A DNA stretch of 64,000 nucleotides from Ramazzottius varieornatus (taxonomy: Eukaryota; Animalia; Tardigrada): positions 478,827 through 542,826 of the forward strand of contig BDGG01000006.1 in the NCBI GenBank assembly GCA_001949185.1, read 5' to 3'. Made by a program: the position numbers and the translations under genes. How positions within the stretch are numbered: the stretch's first letter is position 1; each line of letters begins with the position of its first letter. The notes beneath the pieces are model-generated. The model made no database searches and was not told the origin of the DNA. It saw only the letters and a program-made list of their open reading frames with translations. This document shows, one piece after another, positions 1 to 41,720 of this stretch.

Positions 1-2231
1 AGCTGTGCCCTCATCAGGGTTGTCTTTATAAAGCACGGTGTTACACTGGCTGCATTCCCTTGTTATAAGGTAAATTATCGCTAAAAACCTGGACGTACAC
101 ATTTTTGTAAGGTGTGAATTCTCTCAGTAGCATTTTATTGATGAATTCTTTTGTCGGACACGTTTTCCAGTATGGCGTACGCTCAAGTTGGGCAAGCCAG
201 GCACTTTGTGGTGTTACTAAACCGTTCTCAATTCAAACAAAGCAATCAGTCTGGATACGGAAAATTCGTTCGTGATCGCAAAAGGTATTGCGTTATCGCA
301 ATTCGCAGATAATTTGCGACATCACGGACATTTAAGACATCTGTCACGGTTCAAAACATGATGCCAGTTTACTTTCGCTCTTAAACAATGCCATGAATAT
401 GCATCCGTGCGCCTATGCGACCGCCAAATTATCTTCGGGCTTTCGCTAATTTCAAAAATCCCAAATTTGGGCGATATGCCTCCACACATACCATCCGCTC
501 AGGCCAACCTGTTACCATTCATCAAATCGAGCCAGCGTCGACTCGATTGATATTTCACTTCAAAACTAATTTTTCCCAGGTGGTAAGTCCTACAGTCCTA
601 CTTAATAGAGAAGTTGCACTTTGCACAGATGGTTTGAACAAACGACAGTTTGGACAAAACGATTGCATTTAGAAAAGTTTAAACATTCAAGATTTGTAAT
701 TCGCCTCGCGATTCCCGAAACGAGGGGGGGGGGCTTCGTTCGTGAATCACGAAGAAAATCACCCGTAGATTTCAAACATGAACGAGTTGCCGTCAGTAAT
801 GCTCTGGCTGGCCCGAAGCACTGGGAAGCGTAATCGGTGCCCGGGCAACACAGGGCCTCCACTCCGGACAATCAGTCAATCAGATTTGCATTTGAGCCGG
901 CTCTTCTTTAACTTAGTGGGCTAATTGCTGCTGAACAAACCACCATGACCAGCAGCGGTCGTTTGTCCCAACCTTTTCCTCAAACTCGCCCGCGTTGTGC
1001 AACTTCTCAAAGCTTCTAGCGAATGCTTTTATAAACTTCGATTTTCAACATTAATTAGTTCTCGATTGTTCAGACCATCTGCGCAAAGTGCAACTTCATT
1101 AATGCCTGCTGTAAAATTATCCGCGAGAAATCTGCTTCCGAACAGTGAGGATCGACAGTAATGTCGCCAAGGTGCACAGTGAAAAACGAACCAACTTTCT
1201 CAGCTTTCAAGTCCGTTTTCGGAAAATTGTTCTTCAGTTTTCCGTTGAAGTCCCGTATTACTGATGCTGTAAACAACTAGAACAAAGACTGAGCTACAGG
1301 AAATCTGGTCACAAGCTTGAATCTGCCGTTCTGGAAAAGAGCTAGAATTGTATCCCAAAGCGAGTTTTCCCGGCAGAACGGTCGAATTCGGAGGATTCAA
1401 CTTCATTGCCAAGTGTAGCCCAGATCTTTTTCGGTTTTCTTGTTTGTTCCCAACGGCTAGGATAGTGTCTGTCTGTTTACATCAAATTAGGGATGAAAAC
1501 TCACAGATGGAATTTTTTAGACTGCATTTCACTGGCCGCCGTACGTCTTCTCCAGCGGAAATCGTACTAATCAAGTTTTTCGAAGTGTTCGCTGGCACAA
1601 TTAAAGGGATCATGGCTCAGTGGGAGAAGTTGGAAAATTTTTATGGAAAGTGCGGAAGAAAGAATGGTAAGGCAGAAGCCCAATTTTTTCTTTGTCGAAA
1701 TGCCAGGTGGCAGCAAGCTGGCCTGAGCGGGGTGTAACTACATGTACAAAACAGATGAAAAATGTTCAAACTCCTCTCCTGACACTTAAACGCTCAATAA
1801 AGCCATTTTGGGCATATCGTCACGCTGAAAAATTGCAATGTTCAGGTTCAAAACGATTACTCCTACTTCGAATACAGTAACAGTAAAGAACTAAGAACTT
1901 ATCTTTTGGAATTTTCGAATGTACGGACTTGTCAATCAAGTTCATTTGATTTATTGACGTTTCGAGTGTGCGTACGTAAACCATTTCACGACGCAGTGAT
2001 AGAACTGTGTACCATGACATACTAGCATGACTGAACATCTTGGAAGGATTTTGACGTCGTACAACCGTTTTGGTTCTGCCTGTCTCAAACTTCCAATTCA
2101 TTGAAGTGGGGCAATTGTTTCAGTCACAACATCCGCCACGTTCATCGTCCACTCTCGCAGTTTCAACTGTCTCGTCAGTCTTGTCCAGTTGTGTTCCCAA
2201 CTTCCCATTCCTTCATCGCTCGACTGCAGGC

Positions 2232-4714
2232 ATGTCCCTTTCCGGGACCACTTTTCGATGGCTGGACATTCTGGAAGCCGAATTCGATCGCAGTAAGTCA
2301 ATGTTCGCATGCGTTGAATTAAACATTTATTTTTCCACCCAAGTATCATTCTCGACTTTCAGCTTTTGTGGAGGTGGATCAAATTCTCATCATCCCTGAC
2401 ACTGAGCTGGAATACGTTGTGGGACCTGTGCGTGAACGAATGGCCAAGCTGTGTGCCATCTTCGCCCAGTTGACGGACAAGACGCAGACCATCTTCCAGA
2501 CAAATGCAAAGCTTGAGGTAATGCGTTCACAGCCATAGCTTGATTGATGGATGAAATGGTACCCAGTCAAACAAACTCGACAAACTTCTTTCCAAGAGGC
2601 GTAATCACGCAGGCAGTCGGCTAATAACATTAAAGGATGCGCCACTTGGGACTTGACAAGGTCCCTGTTGCAGGTGGCGCAGGCTTTCGGCCACTAACAT
2701 GGAGATGGTGCGCCACTTGGGAAAACAATCCTGTCGAGTTTCTTTACCTACTGCTGTTATGATCGACTGATTTTCTGCTAACAGGCGCAGCTTTGCAATG
2801 TACGGAGGGATCTCATCGAAGCACAAGCACAGAAGAGTGTGATAGAACAAGAACATCGGAAACTGCTGTTTGAATACCACAGATCACAAGTGGAGAACGC
2901 CAGGGAACGAGGACAAGGTGGACCGGAAGAAACGGAAGCCGAGTCCATTCTACATCGACTGGTATCACGAATTTTCGCACATGTAATTATATTATCTCAA
3001 GGAAGTTTTGGGCGTATTTTTAGACTAATGGCAAGGGATCGTTATCGGCAGTTTCGCTTGACGAAGCTCGGTTAGGTGCCGAAGTGAACCAGCTGCGGAA
3101 AGAGAATGTCCAGCTGCGAGAATGGCTGGTCGATTTACAGAGTGATCTGTTCGGAGCGAACTTGGCTACAAAATACCTCGATAAAGAACTTGCTGGAAGG
3201 TTCGTATTGCAATCGTTGTACTCTAGTTTCCCCGTAAGATCGGACAAAAATAATTGCGAACCCTACAAACAAACTCGACATTCGACAACATGGCTTCTCC
3301 GAGTGGCGTACGCTTCCAGCCGTCAACACCGAAACTGTTCGCCACTTGGAAAACAAGATCGACTGGCTCGCTTTTCCACGTGGCGCACGCTGTCAGCCAC
3401 ACAGGATACATGCGCCACATGGGAGAAGTGTTTCGTTGACTTCGTTTGCTCATCTCCCAATTTTTTTCGGTGGCATAAAACATCAAGACGCAGCGAACAT
3501 GATTTTTCTTTTGTTGCAGAATTCAGCAAATTCAGTTGTTGTCTCGAGACCCAAAAGGCAAAGAAAATCTCAAGTTATGGGATCACCTCGAATCAGAAAT
3601 CAACTTACAAAGGCACAAGACGGTAATTCTGGCGTCCAATGCAGCTCTACTCGCTATTTTCCTACGGTGTTTTGTACTTGTGGGTTCTCTGCTGAAACTG
3701 ACCACATTCTATCTTGCAGATTATCCAAGCTTGCCGGTCAAGAGCCAAAACGAAACCTCGTTTGAAACAAGAATCCCAACAGATAGTAGACGAAGAATAC
3801 ACCACCGAGACCTCAAGCGCCGCCGTGAACGGCCACTCTCCTCAAGATGCATCCGCCGCTTCCGGCGTCCTGCGACAGGTCGAAATTTACAAAGAACCCG
3901 GCAAAGGCCTCGGACTTGTCATCACGGTAAGCCGTTTCTGCTGTATTCTCCGTGTCTCTCAGGACCTTGTGTATCACGACCCACATCAGGTACCATAATA
4001 TTACGTTGTAGGGCGGCTTCGAGCACGGCGTACCTGTACTCATTTCCGACGTCAAAGAAGGCCAACTGGCCGCGGTCAGCGGAAAATTCTTCGTCGGCGA
4101 CGCCATCCTGTCTGTCAATGGTGTTGACCTGAGGAGGGCCAAGCACTCCGAAGCTGTCCAGATACTCTCACAACTCGTAAGAAATTTTCGTTGCCTAGTG
4201 TTTTCATGAAAGGGTTTTAACCCAAATTATGATCTGCGGAAGCCCAAGTCGACAAGATCGTTTTTCGAAGTGGCGCATTCTTTCAGCTGATAAGTCTGAG
4301 AAAGTGCGCCACTTTTGATAGGCGAAAGTTTTGTTTCCCCAGCTGGCGCAGGTCGTCAGTGTTACAGATTGAATCCATGCGCCACTTGGGAAACACCTTG
4401 TGGAGTTCATTTGCTGAGCTCCCTTGGGAAGTCTGTTGAGGTTACTCGATCGCTTTCAGGAAGGGAATATTCACTTCGAGCTGTTGTACCTACAGCCCGA
4501 GTCTGACGAAGACTCAGTGGGTAGTTTCAGTTTCCCCGTGGAGAAGAATGGCTCGAGCGACAGCCTTCGTCCTCTGAACCGGTCAGTCTCCCAGAACTCG
4601 GAAGCCGAAGCCGGCAGCTGTCTTAGCATCCGACGGCGGAGTCGCTTTCCCGGCTACGCTGTCAATATCGCCTCCCAACCCAACCAGCTCGATCAAGTAG
4701 AAACTTCACCTTAA
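2232..4714 (+). CDS. GOPC: Golgi-associated PDZ and coiled-coil motif protein (GOPC/PIST/CAL), 8 exons
   Basis: Manual splicing, all GT-AG: 2232-2292, 2363-2517, 2785-2961, 3024-3199, 3520-3622, 3720-3926, 4012-4176, 4460-4714. Gives [39 protein letters not shown] and a PDZ domain ([35 protein letters not shown]), all characteristic of GOPC. Confidence 0.93.
2568..2748. repeat. Palindromic-module element, 2 modules, GOPC intron 2
   Basis: caaacaaactcgacaa..ccaagaggcg..gcgccacttggg..ggtggcgcagg..gtgcgccacttggga..cctgtcgagttt. Confidence 0.8.
3266..3450. repeat. Palindromic-module element, 2 modules, GOPC intron 4
   Basis: gagtggcgtacg..ttcgccacttgg and cgtggcgcacg..atgcgccacatgg, with actcgaca-type ends. 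Confidence 0.8.
4236..4423. repeat. Palindromic-module element, 2 modules, GOPC intron 7
   Basis: aagtggcgca..gtgcgccactt and ctggcgcagg..tgcgccacttggg; right end tttgctgagctccc. Confidence 0.8.
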
Positions 4715-4734
4715 GTTCTTTTGTATGTTCCCTA

Positions 4735-5039
4735 TAGAAGGCTCGGCGAAACTAAAATAAGCCGCTTTAGCCGTTCTTCGCCGTGACTAAAAATATTTTA
4801 GCCGCGGCTAAAGCAACTAAAATACTTTTCTCCACGGCTAAAATGTATTGTGTGTTCGATTGATTCATTGATGTGGAGTCGGCTAAAATAGTTTTGGCAT
4901 GAATAAATCATTCGAACGNNNNNNNNNNNNNNNNNNNNNNNNNNNNNNNNNNNNNNNNNNNNNNNNNNCCGCGGCTACATATTTTAGCCACGGCTAAGAA
5001 TGGCTAAAACGGCTTATTTTAGCTTCGCCGAGCCTTCTA
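4735..5039. mobile_element. TA-flanked MITE with long imperfect TIRs just 3' of the GOPC stop (contains assembly gap 4919-4968)
   Basis: TA|tagaaggctcggcgaaactaaaataagccg ... cggcttattttagcttcgccgagccttcta|TA; about 70 bp of inverted repeat; internal tagccg/cggcta repeats. Confidence 0.8.
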
Positions 5040-33999: not shown

Positions 34000-34679
34000 A
34001 ACAGTGTTGCTCTGATCATTACAATCGATAACTGAGAATGGCCAAAGACGACCGTTCCTGAGTTCCAATATGACAATCGAAATTTGGAATCCCTGGCTAG
34101 ACAATTCCAGTATTAATTAGAATGGTAATAGAATTCCGAAAACTGAGCAAATTAAGTTTGGTAATTAGAATCGAGAATGTGGCTATTTAAATTATTGAAT
34201 TTGCGCCCTACAGCGCGTTAAAACGAACGTGGGTGTCCCAAGTATCGGAGTTTCTGGGTGTCTGTAGCGCTTGATTGGGCGAATATGTATGCGTATGTGC
34301 ATGTCGCACGACGTATGGCACGAGGCTTACAGTTTTGTTTTGCGAATCACGCGCGGTGCATCGATGTACGCGCGAAATTCAACACTGGTTCCGATATTTT
34401 AACCTAACAACCCCCTAAGGGATGTTTCGCATGTATGACGACGTACGCGCAAGGCTTCAGGGAGCATTTCAAAGTACATGCTTCCATCAGAGCGTCCGTT
34501 TTCAATGCCTTGAGTGCAACATGTTTTGAGTTAAACATCCAACATCCACTCCACGCTTCTGAAACGATAGGCTTAAGTCGCTTTAAAACACGATATCTCG
34601 GGAATATTCAGATCCCAAAAATTAACCACAATAATTGAAATAATTTCAATATTTATTCCAATATTTCAATTGCTGATGC
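34000..34679. repeat. First unit of an old ~680-bp tandem duplication; the second unit is split into 34680-34764 and 40509-~40880
   Basis: 34003 gtgttgctctgatcattacaatcgataactgagaatggccaaagacgacc ~ 34683 gtgttgttccgatcattacaattgatgattgaaaatgaccaaaaacgacc; 34086 ggaatccctggctag ~ 40518 agaatcccaggctgg; 34352 cgcggtgcatcgatgtacgcgcgaa ~ 40690 cgcggtgcatcagcgtacgcgcgaa. Confidence 0.8.
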
Positions 34680-34920
34680 GCCGTGTTGTTCCGATCATTA
34701 CAATTGATGATTGAAAATGACCAAAAACGACCGTTTCGGAATTCGAACATGACAATTAAAATTAGGGTGATGCTATAGGCACCCCGATTTAATTCATTAA
34801 TTCAAACACCCCTTTAATGCGATATGACTATGGACACCCCTGTTTTTGAAATCAGTCTTTCCTTCTAAATTTTTGGCCAGATGTACGCCGTGTTACAACC
34901 GAATGTACTGTGGTATCGAG

Positions 34921-35530
34921 CATGCAGGAAAGAGAGAAAGTAGTCTCACTGCAGAAGTCACGTGCACCTAATAAAGTCATTGTCCGCGAAATGCAGAAGC
35001 TGACCGGTAAAGCCATCATTCCAAAAAACTTCGCGAACGTTAGGAGAAAGATTGACATCGAGGAAAGAGATGGACGGGATGAACAAGGAGTCTTGGATCG
35101 TGTGCTTGCTTAGTATCGGAAGAAAGATCCGAGGGAAAACAATGACGGCAGTCGTCAAATTGTCCCTATCAATAGGCGGCTCGTCCAGAACAAAAAAATA
35201 CGTGGTAGACCAACGTCCAAAGGGAACTTGAGAGAGGCACAGAAGTCTAACAACACGCAGCAAGTCAGGCTTTGAGCCAAAACTGCACGGCCCATTGGTG
35301 TGCTGTTTCGTGGCGGAGGTGGTGCAGAACGGTAACCCAAGCGGATTACTGTTTGTGAAAGGACCTGAACAACGCGAATGGTTAACCAGTGCAATTGAAA
35401 CCGGAACGTACTCGAAGTGCGACCAATGCCGTGGCCGAAGACCAAAAAACGAGTGGAACCCATATAAAAATCGGAATTAAGGGAGAACCTATGGTGGATC
35501 TGTAAAGGTTGTGTTTCAGTCCATGGAAAG
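34921..35530 (+). pseudogene. Probable internally deleted MULE transposase remnant
   Basis: NKVIVREMQKLTGKAIIPKNFANVRRK resembles, from memory, the region preceding the DDE domain in animal MULE/ZSWIM-type transposases; downstream KCDQC..W..WICKGC (across a frameshift) resembles a C-terminal PHD-like finger. Stops present; no DDE core seen. Confidence 0.5.
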
Positions 35531-37084
35531 TCCATCCAGATAGTCAAGCAGAAACAGAGTCATCAGGAACTTGTTGTACTGTGGTCATCTTTCGAAAGCT
35601 CCGTTGAAATATGTCAGAAAGATTCTCTAGACACTGGTCAGACACTGGTCGAACACTGGTAGATTACTGACAGCGAGTGTGGTCGGCGTTCCGTAGTTTA
35701 CTGCTAAAATTTGCAGCAACCTCATACCGTACACGTGCAAGATGCAGGCAGCCTACCGAATGACGCCTGCTGGGTGGTTGAACAGATTGCTTTCGCACAC
35801 CAGAAGTATTTCAACAATGCACTCGCCAACGTCTGACCGATAATTAGCCGAGATCTGGCAGTACTTTAGCAGTAAGCTCAAAGGACAGGGGCCAAATCTT
35901 TCTCAAAAACTAAGAAACGCGGTTGATAATCATTAAACGGATGGCCGTAAGAGAAGTGCAGTACACCTACGATCATGATTTAATATTCCAGCTAGTGAAA
36001 CCGAATATGTCAACCACACACTTGATACCCTTAGCTGATATACTGCCAAGTGGGGAGTCAGACTCAATGAGCGTTTGTTCTCTCATGTACGTAACAGTGC
36101 TGGATTAAGTGTTCGATCTAATGATGAACCAACATCATGGAAGGAACGAAGAGCTACGACTGTCGAAACTGAATTTATTGTGGGAACAGAAAGTTATGGC
36201 CAAACGAAGCGACTCTTGACCGATGCCATATTGTTATTCATCTTCTACTTGAAAAAGGCCCTGTTGATGGGGTCGGTAAGTGCGAAGATCTCGGTGACGT
36301 GACCTAAAAGGACGAATATCAAGATTACGGTTAGACTCACGAACAGAAAATATTTCAGACTTTCAGCATTTCATCAGTTTTGACACTGTAAAGTTACCGA
36401 TGACCGCGATTACAGCTGGCTCCTTCAAAATTGCGTCCGCCCCGCTTCTTCTTCGGGGATTTAGTCGCAAACACGCTTTCTTCTCCTCCAAGCATGTGTA
36501 GCACCAACTTCCACGCGTACTTTGGCCATCCGTTGTTTGGACACACTGCTTTGGGACCGTAATGTTGGACAAGATCTGCCAGAACTGTCTTCTTTATCCA
36601 GACGTCGTACCCAGATCGGATCTGTTGAGAACCAGGGGTCTGCTTCTTCTAGTAGAACGAAGAGACGATGCTTTGTAGCTTTTTCTGAACTGCAACACAA
36701 ATCCACTGTTAATTGACTATCAGACGACTAGCTTCCGAGTCTACTCACTGTCTTGCTCTTCGGTAGGTGTTCCAGCTTGAGACACGTTTCCCCGCAAAGG
36801 TGCAATATTACCTATATGGGTCAGGCAATTTTTCAGTATCGATATGGCGGAGGCGGTTGACAAAGGCTTACTCACTAGACGCTGGTGTATTTGAGCTCCG
36901 ATCTATACGTGGAGAATGCGCAGCTGAGCCTAGAGCAGAAATAATTAGGGTGCATTCGTCTGGCCAGCTTGTGCAATGTTTACCTCGAGCGGCATTATGG
37001 ACAGAATTCTCTGTTGCTGATGATAAGCCGACTGCTTAATCTGGAGTGTGGTCCCGGCTCAAGTTGACCACGGGAGAACAGAAG

Positions 37085-37400
37085 ATTCGAAAGTTGGGGA
37101 AACGAATTTTGCAGTCAAGAGCTGAAGTGATAAATCCAACTTTCGTGTCTTTCAAATTTCCATGTTAGTTTGCTGGACCGAGCAGCGTGGGGTCCAACTT
37201 TCGCAACTTTGAAGCTACGACAATTCAGCGTTCAGTGATTAAGGGTGAACCAAACGAACGGTTTAAATTCTCAAATGTTCGATAGTTGGAACACAAGATG
37301 CGCGATCAAACAAATTAACATGGACATTTCAAAGACACGAAAGTTGGATTTAGCGCTTCGCCGTATTCAGTAGCGGTCGATTTTCCAACTTTCGACAGTT
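37085..37400. mobile_element. Small fold-back (MITE-like) element nested in the MULE
   Basis: taaatccaactttcgtgtctttcaaatttccatgttagtttg (37131) is inverted as caaattaacatggacatttcaaagacacgaaagttggattta (37311); repeated ccaactttcg/cgaaagttgg. Confidence 0.65.
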
Positions 37401-37765
37401 TGTGAGTAGTATGACGTAAAATTTTTGAGCGAGAAATCACGTACGTTGAAAAAACTCCTGAAAGTTTCTTTCCGGAGAAGCACCTGGTAAAACTGGCAAT
37501 CCGAAACTAATTAGTACGCCAACGTTAACAGTCTACATGCTTACCGTCGTTTTCGCAATGTGCTGAGAGGCTACCTATGGAGAATCGAGTTCGAAAAGCG
37601 TTCTGGAAGTGAAGAGCACGATAACTTATTACCGTCGGCCAGATCTTCGTCCGTTTGGGACTGGGCTACTCCGCGAAGACGTTCAGTGTGCTTAGTTTCT
37701 ATCACTGGGCCAGCTGATTTCCGTTTAGAGGCACGAAGAGGTTTCAGTGCCTCATCGCAAGTCTA

Positions 37766-38207
37766 CTTATCATCGTAGACACCGCGGACTATGGTGGAGT
37801 AGTAGCCAGGCTTGCTCTTTTCCGTGGGGCCAAAGTACGCGACGATGTGGTCGCCAACCCTGAGCCCGTTCTCATCCAGGTGGCTTTCCTTGTCCATTCT
37901 GATCTTTACCCAGTTCCCACCTCTAACTTGGCCAAAGTTTATGGCTCGCATCTTCTGGTCGACAATTTTCTGAACTAATACAAAGTCTAAAAGAGATAAC
38001 TAAACGTACAAACTCTCCATCCATAAACAAATATAGTAAATATAGAGTTTGTAGCAAGTATCTAGAAAGATGGAGCTTACGTTTTGCGCTGCGATGGACG
38101 GTTGAAATGGCGTTGATTGTGGCATCTTCGTCTTCTGGAATGTTATCGGAATGTTGAGATGCATGAGATAAAGCCCTCGAGCTTCGTCGAACTCCTTGGG
38201 TTGACAT
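37766..38207 (-). pseudogene. Unidentified spliced gene fragment inside the MULE
   Basis: Coding-like segment MSTQGVRR..HRSAK followed by gtaag and an AT-rich intron, then KIVDQKMRAINFGQVRGGNWVKIRM..VGDHIVAYFGP..YYSTIVRGVYDD; no family recognised. Confidence 0.4.
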
Positions 38208-38569
38208 GATGAAAGTCGTAACTTGGCTAAAAAAGCTACAAAGAAAACGGCGAGAAGCTTTCCTAGTGCATTTGCAGTTCGCGACAGTGTTTCAAAGATA
38301 TGAAGCGTAAGATTGCGCAACCAGTCCGTCACAACATGTTTTCTCGGATTTCGACGACGCGTCAATCTCGCGCGGCAAGGGGCGGAAATGAAGCCATGAT
38401 GAAGGGCCATGCCGCCGCAGTGATTGCCTTAGATTTGCCGAATTCTACCACCTGACGTTCGACGCTGGTAAACACCTACGTACGGGTAGTCGCGCCGCAC
38501 GGGATCGCTCCGTATCCGATATACGGCATTAGTGCTCCGGAATAGTCCGTTCCGTAACCGTTTTGAAAG

Positions 38570-39252
38570 TTGTCATTCCCCGAGGACCTATCCAGGCGAA
38601 AGTTCTGCTACTTTCGTGCATCCGGGACAAGAATCCGTGCGTTTTCTTCGAGCCCAAAATACTCTACAGGTAAGAAGAGCACTCTTTTCTGTGGCGACCC
38701 TTACCTGCGTACGCTGTTACCTGCAGAAAATCACTAGTACTTTATTCAGGTGCGTGCTGGACTTGATAACACTGGACTGATTGACCAGTTCGTCGGTTCA
38801 TTTGCAGGTCCGCTGTCGAAAACGTCCCATCGGGTGACTACACCATTCCTCTCGGCAAAGCAGACGTTCTTCGCAAGGGAACAGATGTAACTGTAGTAGC
38901 GTATGGAACACAGATTCACGTGTTGAAAGAAGTGGCGAATATGGCGCAAGAAAAGCTCGGTGTGTCGTGCGAGGTAATAGACTTAAAGATCATCCTGCCC
39001 TAGGATGCGCAAGCCGTTTGCGAGTCCGTGGTCAAGACCGGCCGACTGCTCATCTCGCACGAAGCTCCGTTAACTAACGGGTTCGCTTCTGATATAGCTT
39101 CGTATGCGCAGAAAGAATGCTTCTTGAAAATGGAAGCACCAATAGAACGAGTGTGTGGAGGGGACACGCCATTTCCGCATTCCATGGAAGCCTTCTACCT
39201 GCCAGACAAATGGCGGTGCCTGGACGCGGTGAAACGCCTGAGCAAATATTAA
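38570..39252 (+). pseudogene. BCKDHB: 5'-truncated, intron-containing branched-chain 2-oxoacid dehydrogenase E1-beta pseudogene
   Basis: Exons 38570-38669 ([33 protein letters not shown]) and 38808-39252 (..[60 protein letters not shown]). TAG at 39001-3 replaces the conserved Trp; no N-terminal exons upstream. Confidence 0.92.
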
Positions 39253-39514
39253 AGGTTCGCTATTGTTATGATGTTCAGTTTTTGTCGGCGTTCATATTGT
39301 ATAAATTATAAAGTTGAAGTTTCATTTGGATCAAAGACTAGATATCTTCCCAATTTTTAGTTGCTCATTCAGATCACAGTTTTACTTCTCTTCCGTCGCA
39401 ATGCTCATGCTTCTACAGAATTTTATTGACTATATTGTTATAGTTTGGAATTTTAAATACGCAAAAAATGTCTGGTCTAAGACTTTCGAATGTTGCGAAC
39501 TTCAGAAATTCTAG

Positions 39515-39769
39515 GTTCCGTTTCTTCCTTCCTGGTTCTTAGAACGAAGGTGTCACCGCTGTCCTCAACAGGTAAACTGTACCCCAACACTCTGTTTTCC
39601 ATTTTGCGTAGGTCGTATTTGGTGATATTTTCATTTCAGACTCCGTATCGCCCTAGACGAGATCGTTCCAGACAAGCGCCGCTATCAACGTGAAAAGTAT
39701 TTCCGCTTCCTCGAGTCTTTCATAGACTACAAAATGGAAACCACTAAGTATTTGTACAATGACAATTAA
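39515..39769 (+). pseudogene. Possible captured last two exons of an unidentified gene
   Basis: ctag|39515-39571|gtaaa..ttcag|39640-39769 splices to EGVTAVLNRLRIALDEIVPDKRRYQREKYFRFLESFIDYKMETTKYLYNDN*, followed by AT-rich UTR-like sequence; an in-frame TAG lies upstream. Confidence 0.4.
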
Positions 39770-41720
39770 ATTCTTCTTTTTCGGTGTCGAGCTTGTACGG
39801 AACCGTCTTTTCTTTTATTTTCTATTCTTTCGTTTCTGGAGACATTTCAAACAGCGCATATCTGGCTCAGTTTTTTAATTTAATAATTCTTGCTCAATAT
39901 CGTGGTCAGAATCATAACGTGCAACGGTAAGATACCCGCAGTGGGGTTCGAATTGGCTCTTAGCAGACATAAAACATTCCGGTAATGTTATGTAATGCAT
40001 ACTTAGGGCGCCTGTGAGGATACACGAATCAGTCTCTCGCCGTATTCCCGCAGTACAACTGAAACGTTCGAGTCAGACACTGAGAGCAGAATACACACGT
40101 TGTATACCTGCCAGATTTTCAAGACACCGCTGATGGATGTTAGACACTAGTAATAATCGGTAGTGTATCGAATCCACTTCTAGTGTCTTACTATTTTGAC
40201 TCTTTTATCTGGGGACGACTGATTATCACAGTAGATGAAGCTGTCGCAATTCGAGTCAGGCTTAGCAGCATGCTCGCCAATCGACCCATTGTGGGATGGA
40301 GCGCTTGATAAAAACATGGTTTTTGCCTTTCAAGGATGGTTTCTGCCTGTCAGTAAAGTTCGGGGTGTCAGTAGCTGCTTACCGGAGTAGGGGTTTCCTA
40401 ATTAGTGAATTAAGTAGGGGTGCCTTCAGCAAACAGGAATTAAATAGGAGTGCGATAGGGGTGCCTATAGCCAAACGGGGTTTTCAGGGGTGCCTATAGC
40501 CATTTCCCTCGAAATTAAGAATCCCAGGCTGGAAATTTCCAATATTGATTAGATTTGTATTAGAATTCGGAAAACTGGAATGAATTATAATTGATAATAG
40601 AAATTAGTTTCCGGCGAACACGTGTGCGCATGTGCGTGCCACACGAGGGAGCAAGGCATGATGCTTACTGTACTGCGTCGTGAGCCACCCGCGGTGCATC
40701 AGCGTACGCGCGAAGTTGAACCCCGGCCCCGACATTTTTTTCCTACCAACCCCCTGACGGCTGTTTCAATATTATGATGACGTGCGTGCAAGATTTGATG
40801 GGACATTACAGTACCTGATCAATCTGCGCGTCAGTATTGAATGCCTTGAGGATAGCGTGCTTCGTGTTGAACATCTGACGGGAAGACGTTGTGCCAAGGA
40901 GGAACAATTATGCCACATACCCCATTTTTAAGCAGCAACTTCCAACTTCAATCTGAAAAGTTTAAAACTATTTGGTTTATCATATGAAACCGAAAAAAAC
41001 GACAACAAAGTCGAGCTTGTTTACAAAATAAGTTTGGAACTTGAACTTTGGCCGTTTTGCCGGGACAACCCCTTCCATGTCAAAGAGTGTAACTTCTGAT
41101 TTGGGCAGTATATCTCTGCTTTTAAGCTCGTCGCAGGTAGCCTTGTTATTGTTCAATTTGTTTTAGCTGTTAACAGCACAGAAAAAGCAGAAAAAATCAA
41201 GAAGACCATTTTTGAAAAATGCCGAAAAATCTGCGAAAGCTGTCTTTTCGAGGGTCTTCCGTTGTCACAAAAATTCGTCGTACGGCCGTGTCTCGTATAG
41301 TTTAACATATTTGTTCTTGATAACGATACGCCATTGTTTTCGCTATCTACGAATGCCATGTTCGACGCGAAAACATTTTGATGGAGAGAGCTCTGATTTT
41401 CAGAAGGTGGTAGCGATGTGGCCCGAACGGGCTGTAATTTGGCAGAGCTGAGTCTCAGATAATTGAAATTGCTGCCGCCCCCAAGTATTCCGATTAATCG
41501 TGATTGCAATTAGATTCGAAAAAGTCATATTGGAGCAGCACTGGTCAAAAACACTTGTGCACTGGGTAAAGCTTTCCAGTATGGCGTGGCCAATCGTCGT
41601 CATATGGAGCTACGTTGAGAGGAAAAGTGTTAGTAGTTTAACCAATCATACCGTTATGATATGTCCGCTATGATTAACAATGTATCCTGATTCGGTAAAC
41701 CAAGTTGTTTTCTCTCAATA

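Follow-up and report, generated by a model that had tools for sequence, protein, structure and literature searches.

The stretch of DNA analysed here (the window) comprises 64,000 nucleotides of the tardigrade Ramazzottius varieornatus, C6:478827-542826 in an assembly of 55.8 Mb and 200 contigs. Its interval 34765-40508 had been interpreted from the bare letters (the sequence-only reading) as an animal Pack-MULE, i.e. a 5.7-kb Mutator-like element (MULE) that captured fragments from two or three host loci and moved as a unit. The reading favoured here, at a probability of about 0.8, is a layered structure instead: an old Mutator-like element of ~1 kb, called A, is split by an unrelated nested DNA transposon, called B, which bears a 976-bp piece of the gene BCKDHB, and the donor of this piece was not the BCKDHB gene now present in the genome.

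Element A consists of two plus-strand arms, 34765-35458 and 40214-40508. The left arm starts at 34765 with the conserved terminus GGGTGATGCTATAGGCACCCC and holds one subterminal repeat unit and an interior read as the leftover of a MULE transposase gene; the right arm holds GGGGTGCCTATAGCC repeats and closes with the terminus ...CCATTTCC(C), with ...GGGGTGCCTATAGCCATTTCCC finishing at 40508. The sequence CTATAGGCACCCC is present in inverted orientation at both ends (34772-34785 and 40487-40500; 14 nt, 100% complementary), with three CACCCC motifs beneath the left end and five GGGGTG motifs beneath the right end, which bears out the G-starting inverted ends and subterminal repeats of the sequence-only reading. 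The 9-bp target-site duplication (TSD) was likewise real in kind but imperfect in the window, where TTAAAATTA (34756-34764) and TCGAAATTA (40509-40517) agree at only 7/9 positions; other A copies show 9/9 in four cases (AAACTCTAA, TTCTTAGTT, TAATGTTTT, and TCATGAAAA) and 8/9 in three, and a paralogous uninterrupted site, TCGAAATTT, near 34077-34085 backs the duplication in the window. The adjoining paralogous repeat unit, 34004-34540, is continuous across the A insertion site (...GACAATCGAAATTTGGAATCCC...).

Searching the genome with the left terminus GGGTGATGCTATAGGCACCCC gave 22 matches, against none for a reversed control. In all, ~27 left and ~44 right A-end matches were found, mostly paired 0.15-1.2 kb apart. 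These copies start with GGGTGATG, contain one to three subterminal repeat units, and end in CCATTTCC; the terminal inverted repeats (TIRs) conserved across the family, GGGTGATGCTATAGGCACCCC and GGAAATGGCTATAGGCACCCC, are short for a MULE. At their ends they are 9-19% diverged from the window copy.

A transposase-like remnant had been placed at 34921-35530, and this held up for relatives of the window copy rather than for the copy itself: the last 72 bp of that interval run into B, and a profile search of the open reading frames (ORFs) gave no Pfam match in the A interior of the window copy, this interval included. Contig C133, which represents the same locus (99.5-99.7% identical over 34307-35286), has an additional 569 bp between 34917 and 34918, in which one ORF matches ZSWIM3_N (PF21599; 32.2 bits against a cut-off of 27.8) and the next ORF shows a weak FAR1 match (E 0.0036). 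Pieces of the ZSWIM3_N ORF were found in two other A copies. ZSWIM3_N/FAR1 is the kind of DNA-binding domain that MULE transposases have at their N terminus. The genome holds 12 matches to the MULE DDE domain PF10551, 10 of them above cut-off, and when compared by coordinates with the 22 A termini none was close, i.e. no autonomous partner of A was found among them. The Mutator-type 9-bp duplications, the G-starting inverted ends, and the ZSWIM3_N/FAR1-type remnant in C133 and other copies support the assignment of A as a probable non-autonomous member of a Mutator-like family, as the sequence-only reading had proposed for the outer element.

Three further observations concern A and its surroundings. 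C133 (L001) is a contig of 1545 bp with the extra bases at 369-937, and a contig of X9, one of the sequencing runs used below, begins at 34918 with a loose end that matches the C133 insert; the window could thus represent a deletion allele at 34917/34918, or the assembly may have collapsed there. The right end of A with 48 bp of flank (40459-40556) recurs inverted and 92% identical at C6:542971-543068 (L023/L033), ~145-242 bases past the end of the window. This match marks the 'left' end of the A copy that follows at a distance of 23.7 kb. Both termini of that copy are of the right type and it lacks a matching target duplication, which suggests aberrant transposition or an inverted duplication involving A ends. 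At least three repeat families, each present in tens of copies, make up the DNA flanking A (34004-34540, 34683-34764, and 40509-41100; query parts 3-99, 105-374, and 372-592), and the region is a nest of transposons.

Element B occupies 35459-40213, i.e. 4755 of the 5744 bp spanned by A, and has inverted ends of the form CCCAKATAAAAA...GGG. Its 5' part (35459-38563, plus strand) starts with CCCATATAAAAATCGG and its 3' part (39541-40213, plus strand) ends in ...TTTTATCTGGG. The genome contains ~10 copies that are 94-96% alike, and the segments 35459-38564 and 39541-40213 match seven other loci (on C4, C1, C7, C24, and C2, and twice on C11) at 92-95% in the same order and orientation. The ends common to the copies are CCCATATAAAAATCGG on the 5' side and TTTTTATCTGGG on the 3' side (also given as CCCATATAAAAA... 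and ...TTTTTATCTGGG); 8 such 5' ends and 9 such 3' ends were counted in the genome, against none in controls. Other B copies are flanked by the 3-bp duplications TTG, GAT, TAA, TAA, and TTA, and the window copy by GAA (35456-35458; GAC in intact A copies) and GAC (40214-40216). Inverted ends together with duplications of constant length in several copies identify B as a TIR DNA transposon.

Intact A copies are uninterrupted at the point where B sits (...GAGTGGAC GATAGTG...). They read ...CGAGTGGAC GATAGTGAAACCTCA ACTGATTAT..., while the window reads ...CGAGTGGAA, then B, and then GACG ACTGATTAT..., and B therefore entered A at GAC, with a 14-bp deletion of A sequence beside the right copy of the duplication.

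The superfamily of B was pursued through its ORFs. PIF-Harbinger, CMC, and Zator are superfamilies with 3-bp TSDs, and all three were considered and set aside: no superfamily-specific transposase was found, and only 3/6 target duplications fit TWA. None of the ~30 ORFs from the window, C1, and C2 copies of B reached the cut-off of any Pfam family (~37 ORFs with those of the window copy of A included, none above cut-off). Six other B copies also contain the 62-amino-acid ORF of 37766-37951 (at 86-98%), which gave no significant match to Pfam or to PDB sequences. B does appear to be transcribed and spliced, which follows from four minus-strand introns in contigs of a run that behaves as RNA (X11), with CT..AC joints on the plus strand at 36301/36396, 36689/36749, 36809/36874, and 36928/36983. 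These introns are short (54-94 nt) and lie within 36052-37150. The contig over the first joint has 10 differences from the window, so at least this joint derives from another B copy, and in the window copy no open frame runs across the exons implied by X11.

Divergence among the B copies is star-like, with 2.1-2.8% private to each copy and pairwise values of 3.5-5.8%. Separately, the C2 copy of B has an interior of ~1.08 kb that is single-copy in the genome (L086 2277-3355; C2:1661335-1662413), for which neither a parent locus in the genome nor a Pfam match was found; a 300-bp palindromic repeat comes after it. This interior could be an ancestral part of B that the other copies have lost, or else other filler. 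All B copies also share an inverted repeat pair at 37124-37359 (89 nt, 81% complementary, 58-nt spacer).

Within B, the stretch 38564-39540 is the only part that is not B sequence, and the BCKDHB piece fills this gap exactly. The window copy is thus composed of B (positions 1-3106), 976 bp of BCKDHB, and B again (4083-4755), the cargo standing in place of positions 3091-4601 (~1.5 kb) of the longest B copy. Its whole length aligns with C2:1343112-1344070, at 84% over 978 columns, and it comprises on the plus strand the last 35 codons of exon 1 (38564-38669; KVVIPRGP...KILYR), a retained intron with intact GT..AG (38670-38807), the last exon with the transketolase C-terminal domain (38808-39252), and 288 bp of 3' flank (39253-39540). 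Only the last 182 codons of BCKDHB are present, and a TAG replaces Trp at codon 100 of these (39001-39003), ahead of the normal stop at 39250-39252; the intron-retaining BCKDHB piece with a premature stop was thus read correctly from the sequence. The piece falls short of a full-length ORF with Transket_pyr and Transketolase_C. The resident gene on C2 is intact, with open exons of 226 and 148 codons around a 137-bp intron, and its first exon is 85% identical to a Hypsibius exemplaris protein, the closest among named proteins, which places the animal among the eutardigrades. No third BCKDHB locus was found in the assembly.

Host DNA flanked on both sides by one TIR transposon, with a related locus elsewhere in the genome, defines a Pack-TIR, and this is what the object is, a type already catalogued in animals and not a Pack-MULE. 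The B copy C11b has an interior deletion beginning at the same B base as the replacement by cargo. Interior deletion with filler is the pattern that gap repair leaves, and it agrees with the single-copy class of Pack-TIRs and the gap-filling model proposed for them (PMC8277862). The sequence of events was probably as follows. The non-autonomous A landed in a copy of the local repeat with a 9-bp target duplication, and the low-copy B later entered it at GAC, creating a 3-bp duplication; ~1.5 kb of the B interior was swapped for 976 bp of genomic BCKDHB DNA, perhaps before and perhaps after B landed in A. The most likely route for the cargo is repair of a double-strand gap with template switching, whether by gap filling or by abortive synthesis-dependent strand annealing, in which the interior of a transposable element (TE) is deleted and filler is pasted in, giving a single-copy Pack-TIR.

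The parental gene expected by the sequence-only reading does exist intact on C2, but it is not the direct donor. The fragment differs from the resident gene by 6.6% and 9.7% in the two exons, 21% in the intron, and 24% in the 3' flank, with a synonymous divergence (dS) of 0.33, a non-synonymous divergence (dN) of 0.032, and a dN/dS of 0.096. The 14 amino-acid differences were polarised with Hypsibius (P0003) and a closer relative (P0001/P0121): in 12 of them the fragment has the derived state, in one the resident gene has it, and one is ambiguous. This amounts to 0.029 non-synonymous changes per site on the fragment branch, compared with a private divergence of B of 0.021-0.028, and the decay of the fragment, ~2.5-3% per site since capture, is therefore probably about as old as its carrier. 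If its decay is only as old as the carrier, then most of the silent and non-coding divergence predates capture and accumulated while both genes were under purifying selection.

One alternative is that the fragment was simply copied from the resident gene and that its divergence reflects only age or a locally raised mutation rate. The C2 gene is indeed the sole other BCKDHB locus in the assembly, and homology runs on through the intron and 3' flank. However, a neutral copy of the resident gene predicts a non-synonymous share of ~63%, against the 14/49 seen (P <= 1.4e-6), and the 549 coding bases contain no frameshift despite 21-24% divergence in non-coding DNA. Capture is also no older than the split of this B copy from copies that keep the interior, which are 4.4-5.5% apart in pairwise comparison, and at residue 48 both outgroups agree with the fragment, the derived state being that of the resident gene. 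Such a plain copy is therefore improbable.

With a neutral copy rejected, the donor would be a second, functional BCKDHB that had diverged by ~17-19% at neutral sites from the resident gene by the time of capture. Six states shared against the P0001/P0121 gene place this donor nearer to the resident gene than that relative. It may have been a lost paralogue, a homeologue or allele from past hybridisation, or a gene of a related species from which the loaded element arrived. A bolder version, which I consider possible but doubtful, excludes the ordinary lost paralogue and takes the fragment as the sole surviving trace of a homeologue or foreign allele (through hybridisation or introgression), or of horizontal transfer from a related tardigrade. 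Its corollary, equally tentative, is that a second BCKDHB copy, then ~17-19% from the resident gene, shared the nucleus ~2.5-3% of neutral divergence ago. If this were true, TE-borne fragments would be 'fossils' that date such an event, possibly the same one that triggered the burst of B. The point of note is the mismatch in age: carrier and cargo have decayed by ~2.5-3%, yet the cargo stands at a dS of 0.33 from the resident gene, under strong purifying selection. Should other transposon-borne fragments of this genome share the offset, this would point to past hybridisation, a lost duplication, or transfer of transposons across species.

The Pack-MULE itself, with two or three host fragments captured by a Mutator-like element and transposed as one 5.7-kb unit, is now very unlikely. 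The ends and the 9-bp duplication of A are real, and a host gene piece does lie in the interior. Against this, 4755 bp form a second transposon, complete with ends and a 3-bp duplication of its own and placed where other A copies run through without a break, and the host piece sits inside this transposon. The intervals 37766-38207 (in the 5' part of B) and 39515-39769 (assigned to the 3' part), which had been taken for separate host captures, are both B family sequence present in most or all B copies compared, and several host loci are thus reduced to one, as 38564-39540 alone has a single-copy genic parent. The paired A copies read other than the window copy all measure 0.15-1.2 kb and none carries such cargo. 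Movement as a unit also fails on age: A copies are ~9-19% apart compared with ~5% for B, i.e. A is about twice as diverged, and A is therefore the older layer that predates the arrival of B. The claimed animal Pack-MULE is thereby removed and replaced by a well-bounded Pack-TIR inside a nested insertion, and the case illustrates that nested transposons can pass for cargo from several loci.

The four junctions were checked against contigs of sequencing runs, in which depth is coarse; the runs include two guessed to be RNA as well as two independent DNA-type samples. The A-B junction (35458/35459) is crossed by X9 (34918-35521) and the junction of B with the fragment (38564) by X1 (38505-39036) and, from another sample, X4 (38446-39038), all with 0 differences. 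Contigs of X1 and X9 (39219-39570, 0 differences) cross from the fragment back into B (39540/39541), and X11 (39872-40312) and X9 (40149-40480) cross the B-A junction (40213/40214) with 0 and 1 differences. Three of the four junctions are bridged cleanly, the entry into the fragment both in a DNA run of 2016 and in an independent sample of 2020. Contig depth is ~27 in the fragment, compared with ~100 in B; in the DNA run it is flat at ~27 across the fragment, and no second near-identical contig was found. An assembly artefact, in which mis-joined repeats created a BCKDHB piece or a nesting that the animal does not have, might be suspected in a repeat-rich region of an assembly of the older short-read and Sanger type (PMC11071193), with another version of the A interior on the short contig C133, but the zero-difference contigs from two samples, the crossing of both A-B boundaries by other runs, and the flat single-copy depth make it hardly credible. 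It is just as hard to believe that the piece is under selection as part of a functional chimeric gene, as its dN/dS of 0.096, intact splice sites, absence of frameshifts, and contigs on fragment parts in the runs guessed to be RNA might suggest, given the premature TAG where a Trp is conserved, the W>G and G>V changes at conserved positions among 12 derived replacements, the missing N-terminal half of the enzyme, and a capture bounded by the age of B, within which long-term selection cannot give a dS of 0.33.

Several points weigh against the layered reading or parts of it. The donor was not found in the assembly, which has two BCKDHB loci only, and the argument for it presumes equal neutral rates in the arms of B and the fragment. 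The cargo junctions show 1 nt and 0 nt of microhomology, which fits end joining equally well as template switching. The target duplication of B in the window is imperfect (GAA/GAC) and has the 14-bp deletion beside it; neither a transposase nor an autonomous partner of B was found, and its mobility is deduced from ends and target duplications only. Finally, contiguity was judged from contigs, and those from the fragment back into B reach only 30 nt into B, one short of the bridging criterion.

Among known systems, A resembles the non-autonomous MULE and miniature inverted-repeat transposable element (MITE) families of tardigrades (PMC11071193), being of the MULE class with most copies of 0.15-1.2 kb and devoid of transposase; none of the 12 PF10551 matches is near an A terminus, where an autonomous partner might have been expected. 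The same study reports MULE, CMC, PIF-Harbinger, and Zator for two tardigrade genomes taken together, and for R. varieornatus a recent accumulation of DNA transposons at 1-5% divergence (PMC11071193). Plant Pack-MULEs share with this locus the Mutator-type outer ends, the 9-bp duplication, and an intron-bearing gene fragment in between, but here the fragment belongs to another transposon that inserted into the MULE, and none of the other copies read from the MULE family has cargo.

Closer parallels come from internally deleted transposons with filler DNA, of which Ac/Ds are further examples. As in the gap-repair model for P elements (cited in PMC8277862), both ends are kept around foreign filler, junction homology is little or none, and the deletion of a sibling B copy begins at the same point; the difference lies with B, which has a 3-bp duplication, CCC...GGG ends, and no transposase found in its ORFs to place it in a superfamily. 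The closest match is with animal Pack-TIRs, which have been reported in 55 animal species, in a survey whose main text makes no mention of tardigrades (0 occurrences; PMC8277862). Like the cargo described here, these are single-copy, intron-containing, and fragmentary pieces of host DNA within one TIR transposon, for which an origin by gap filling with template switching has been proposed. They differ in a median cargo of 224 bp, compared with 976 bp here, and in that B is itself nested in another transposon. That survey centred on young Pack-TIRs, whereas the cargo in B is far more diverged from its sole resident parent than the age of its carrier permits.

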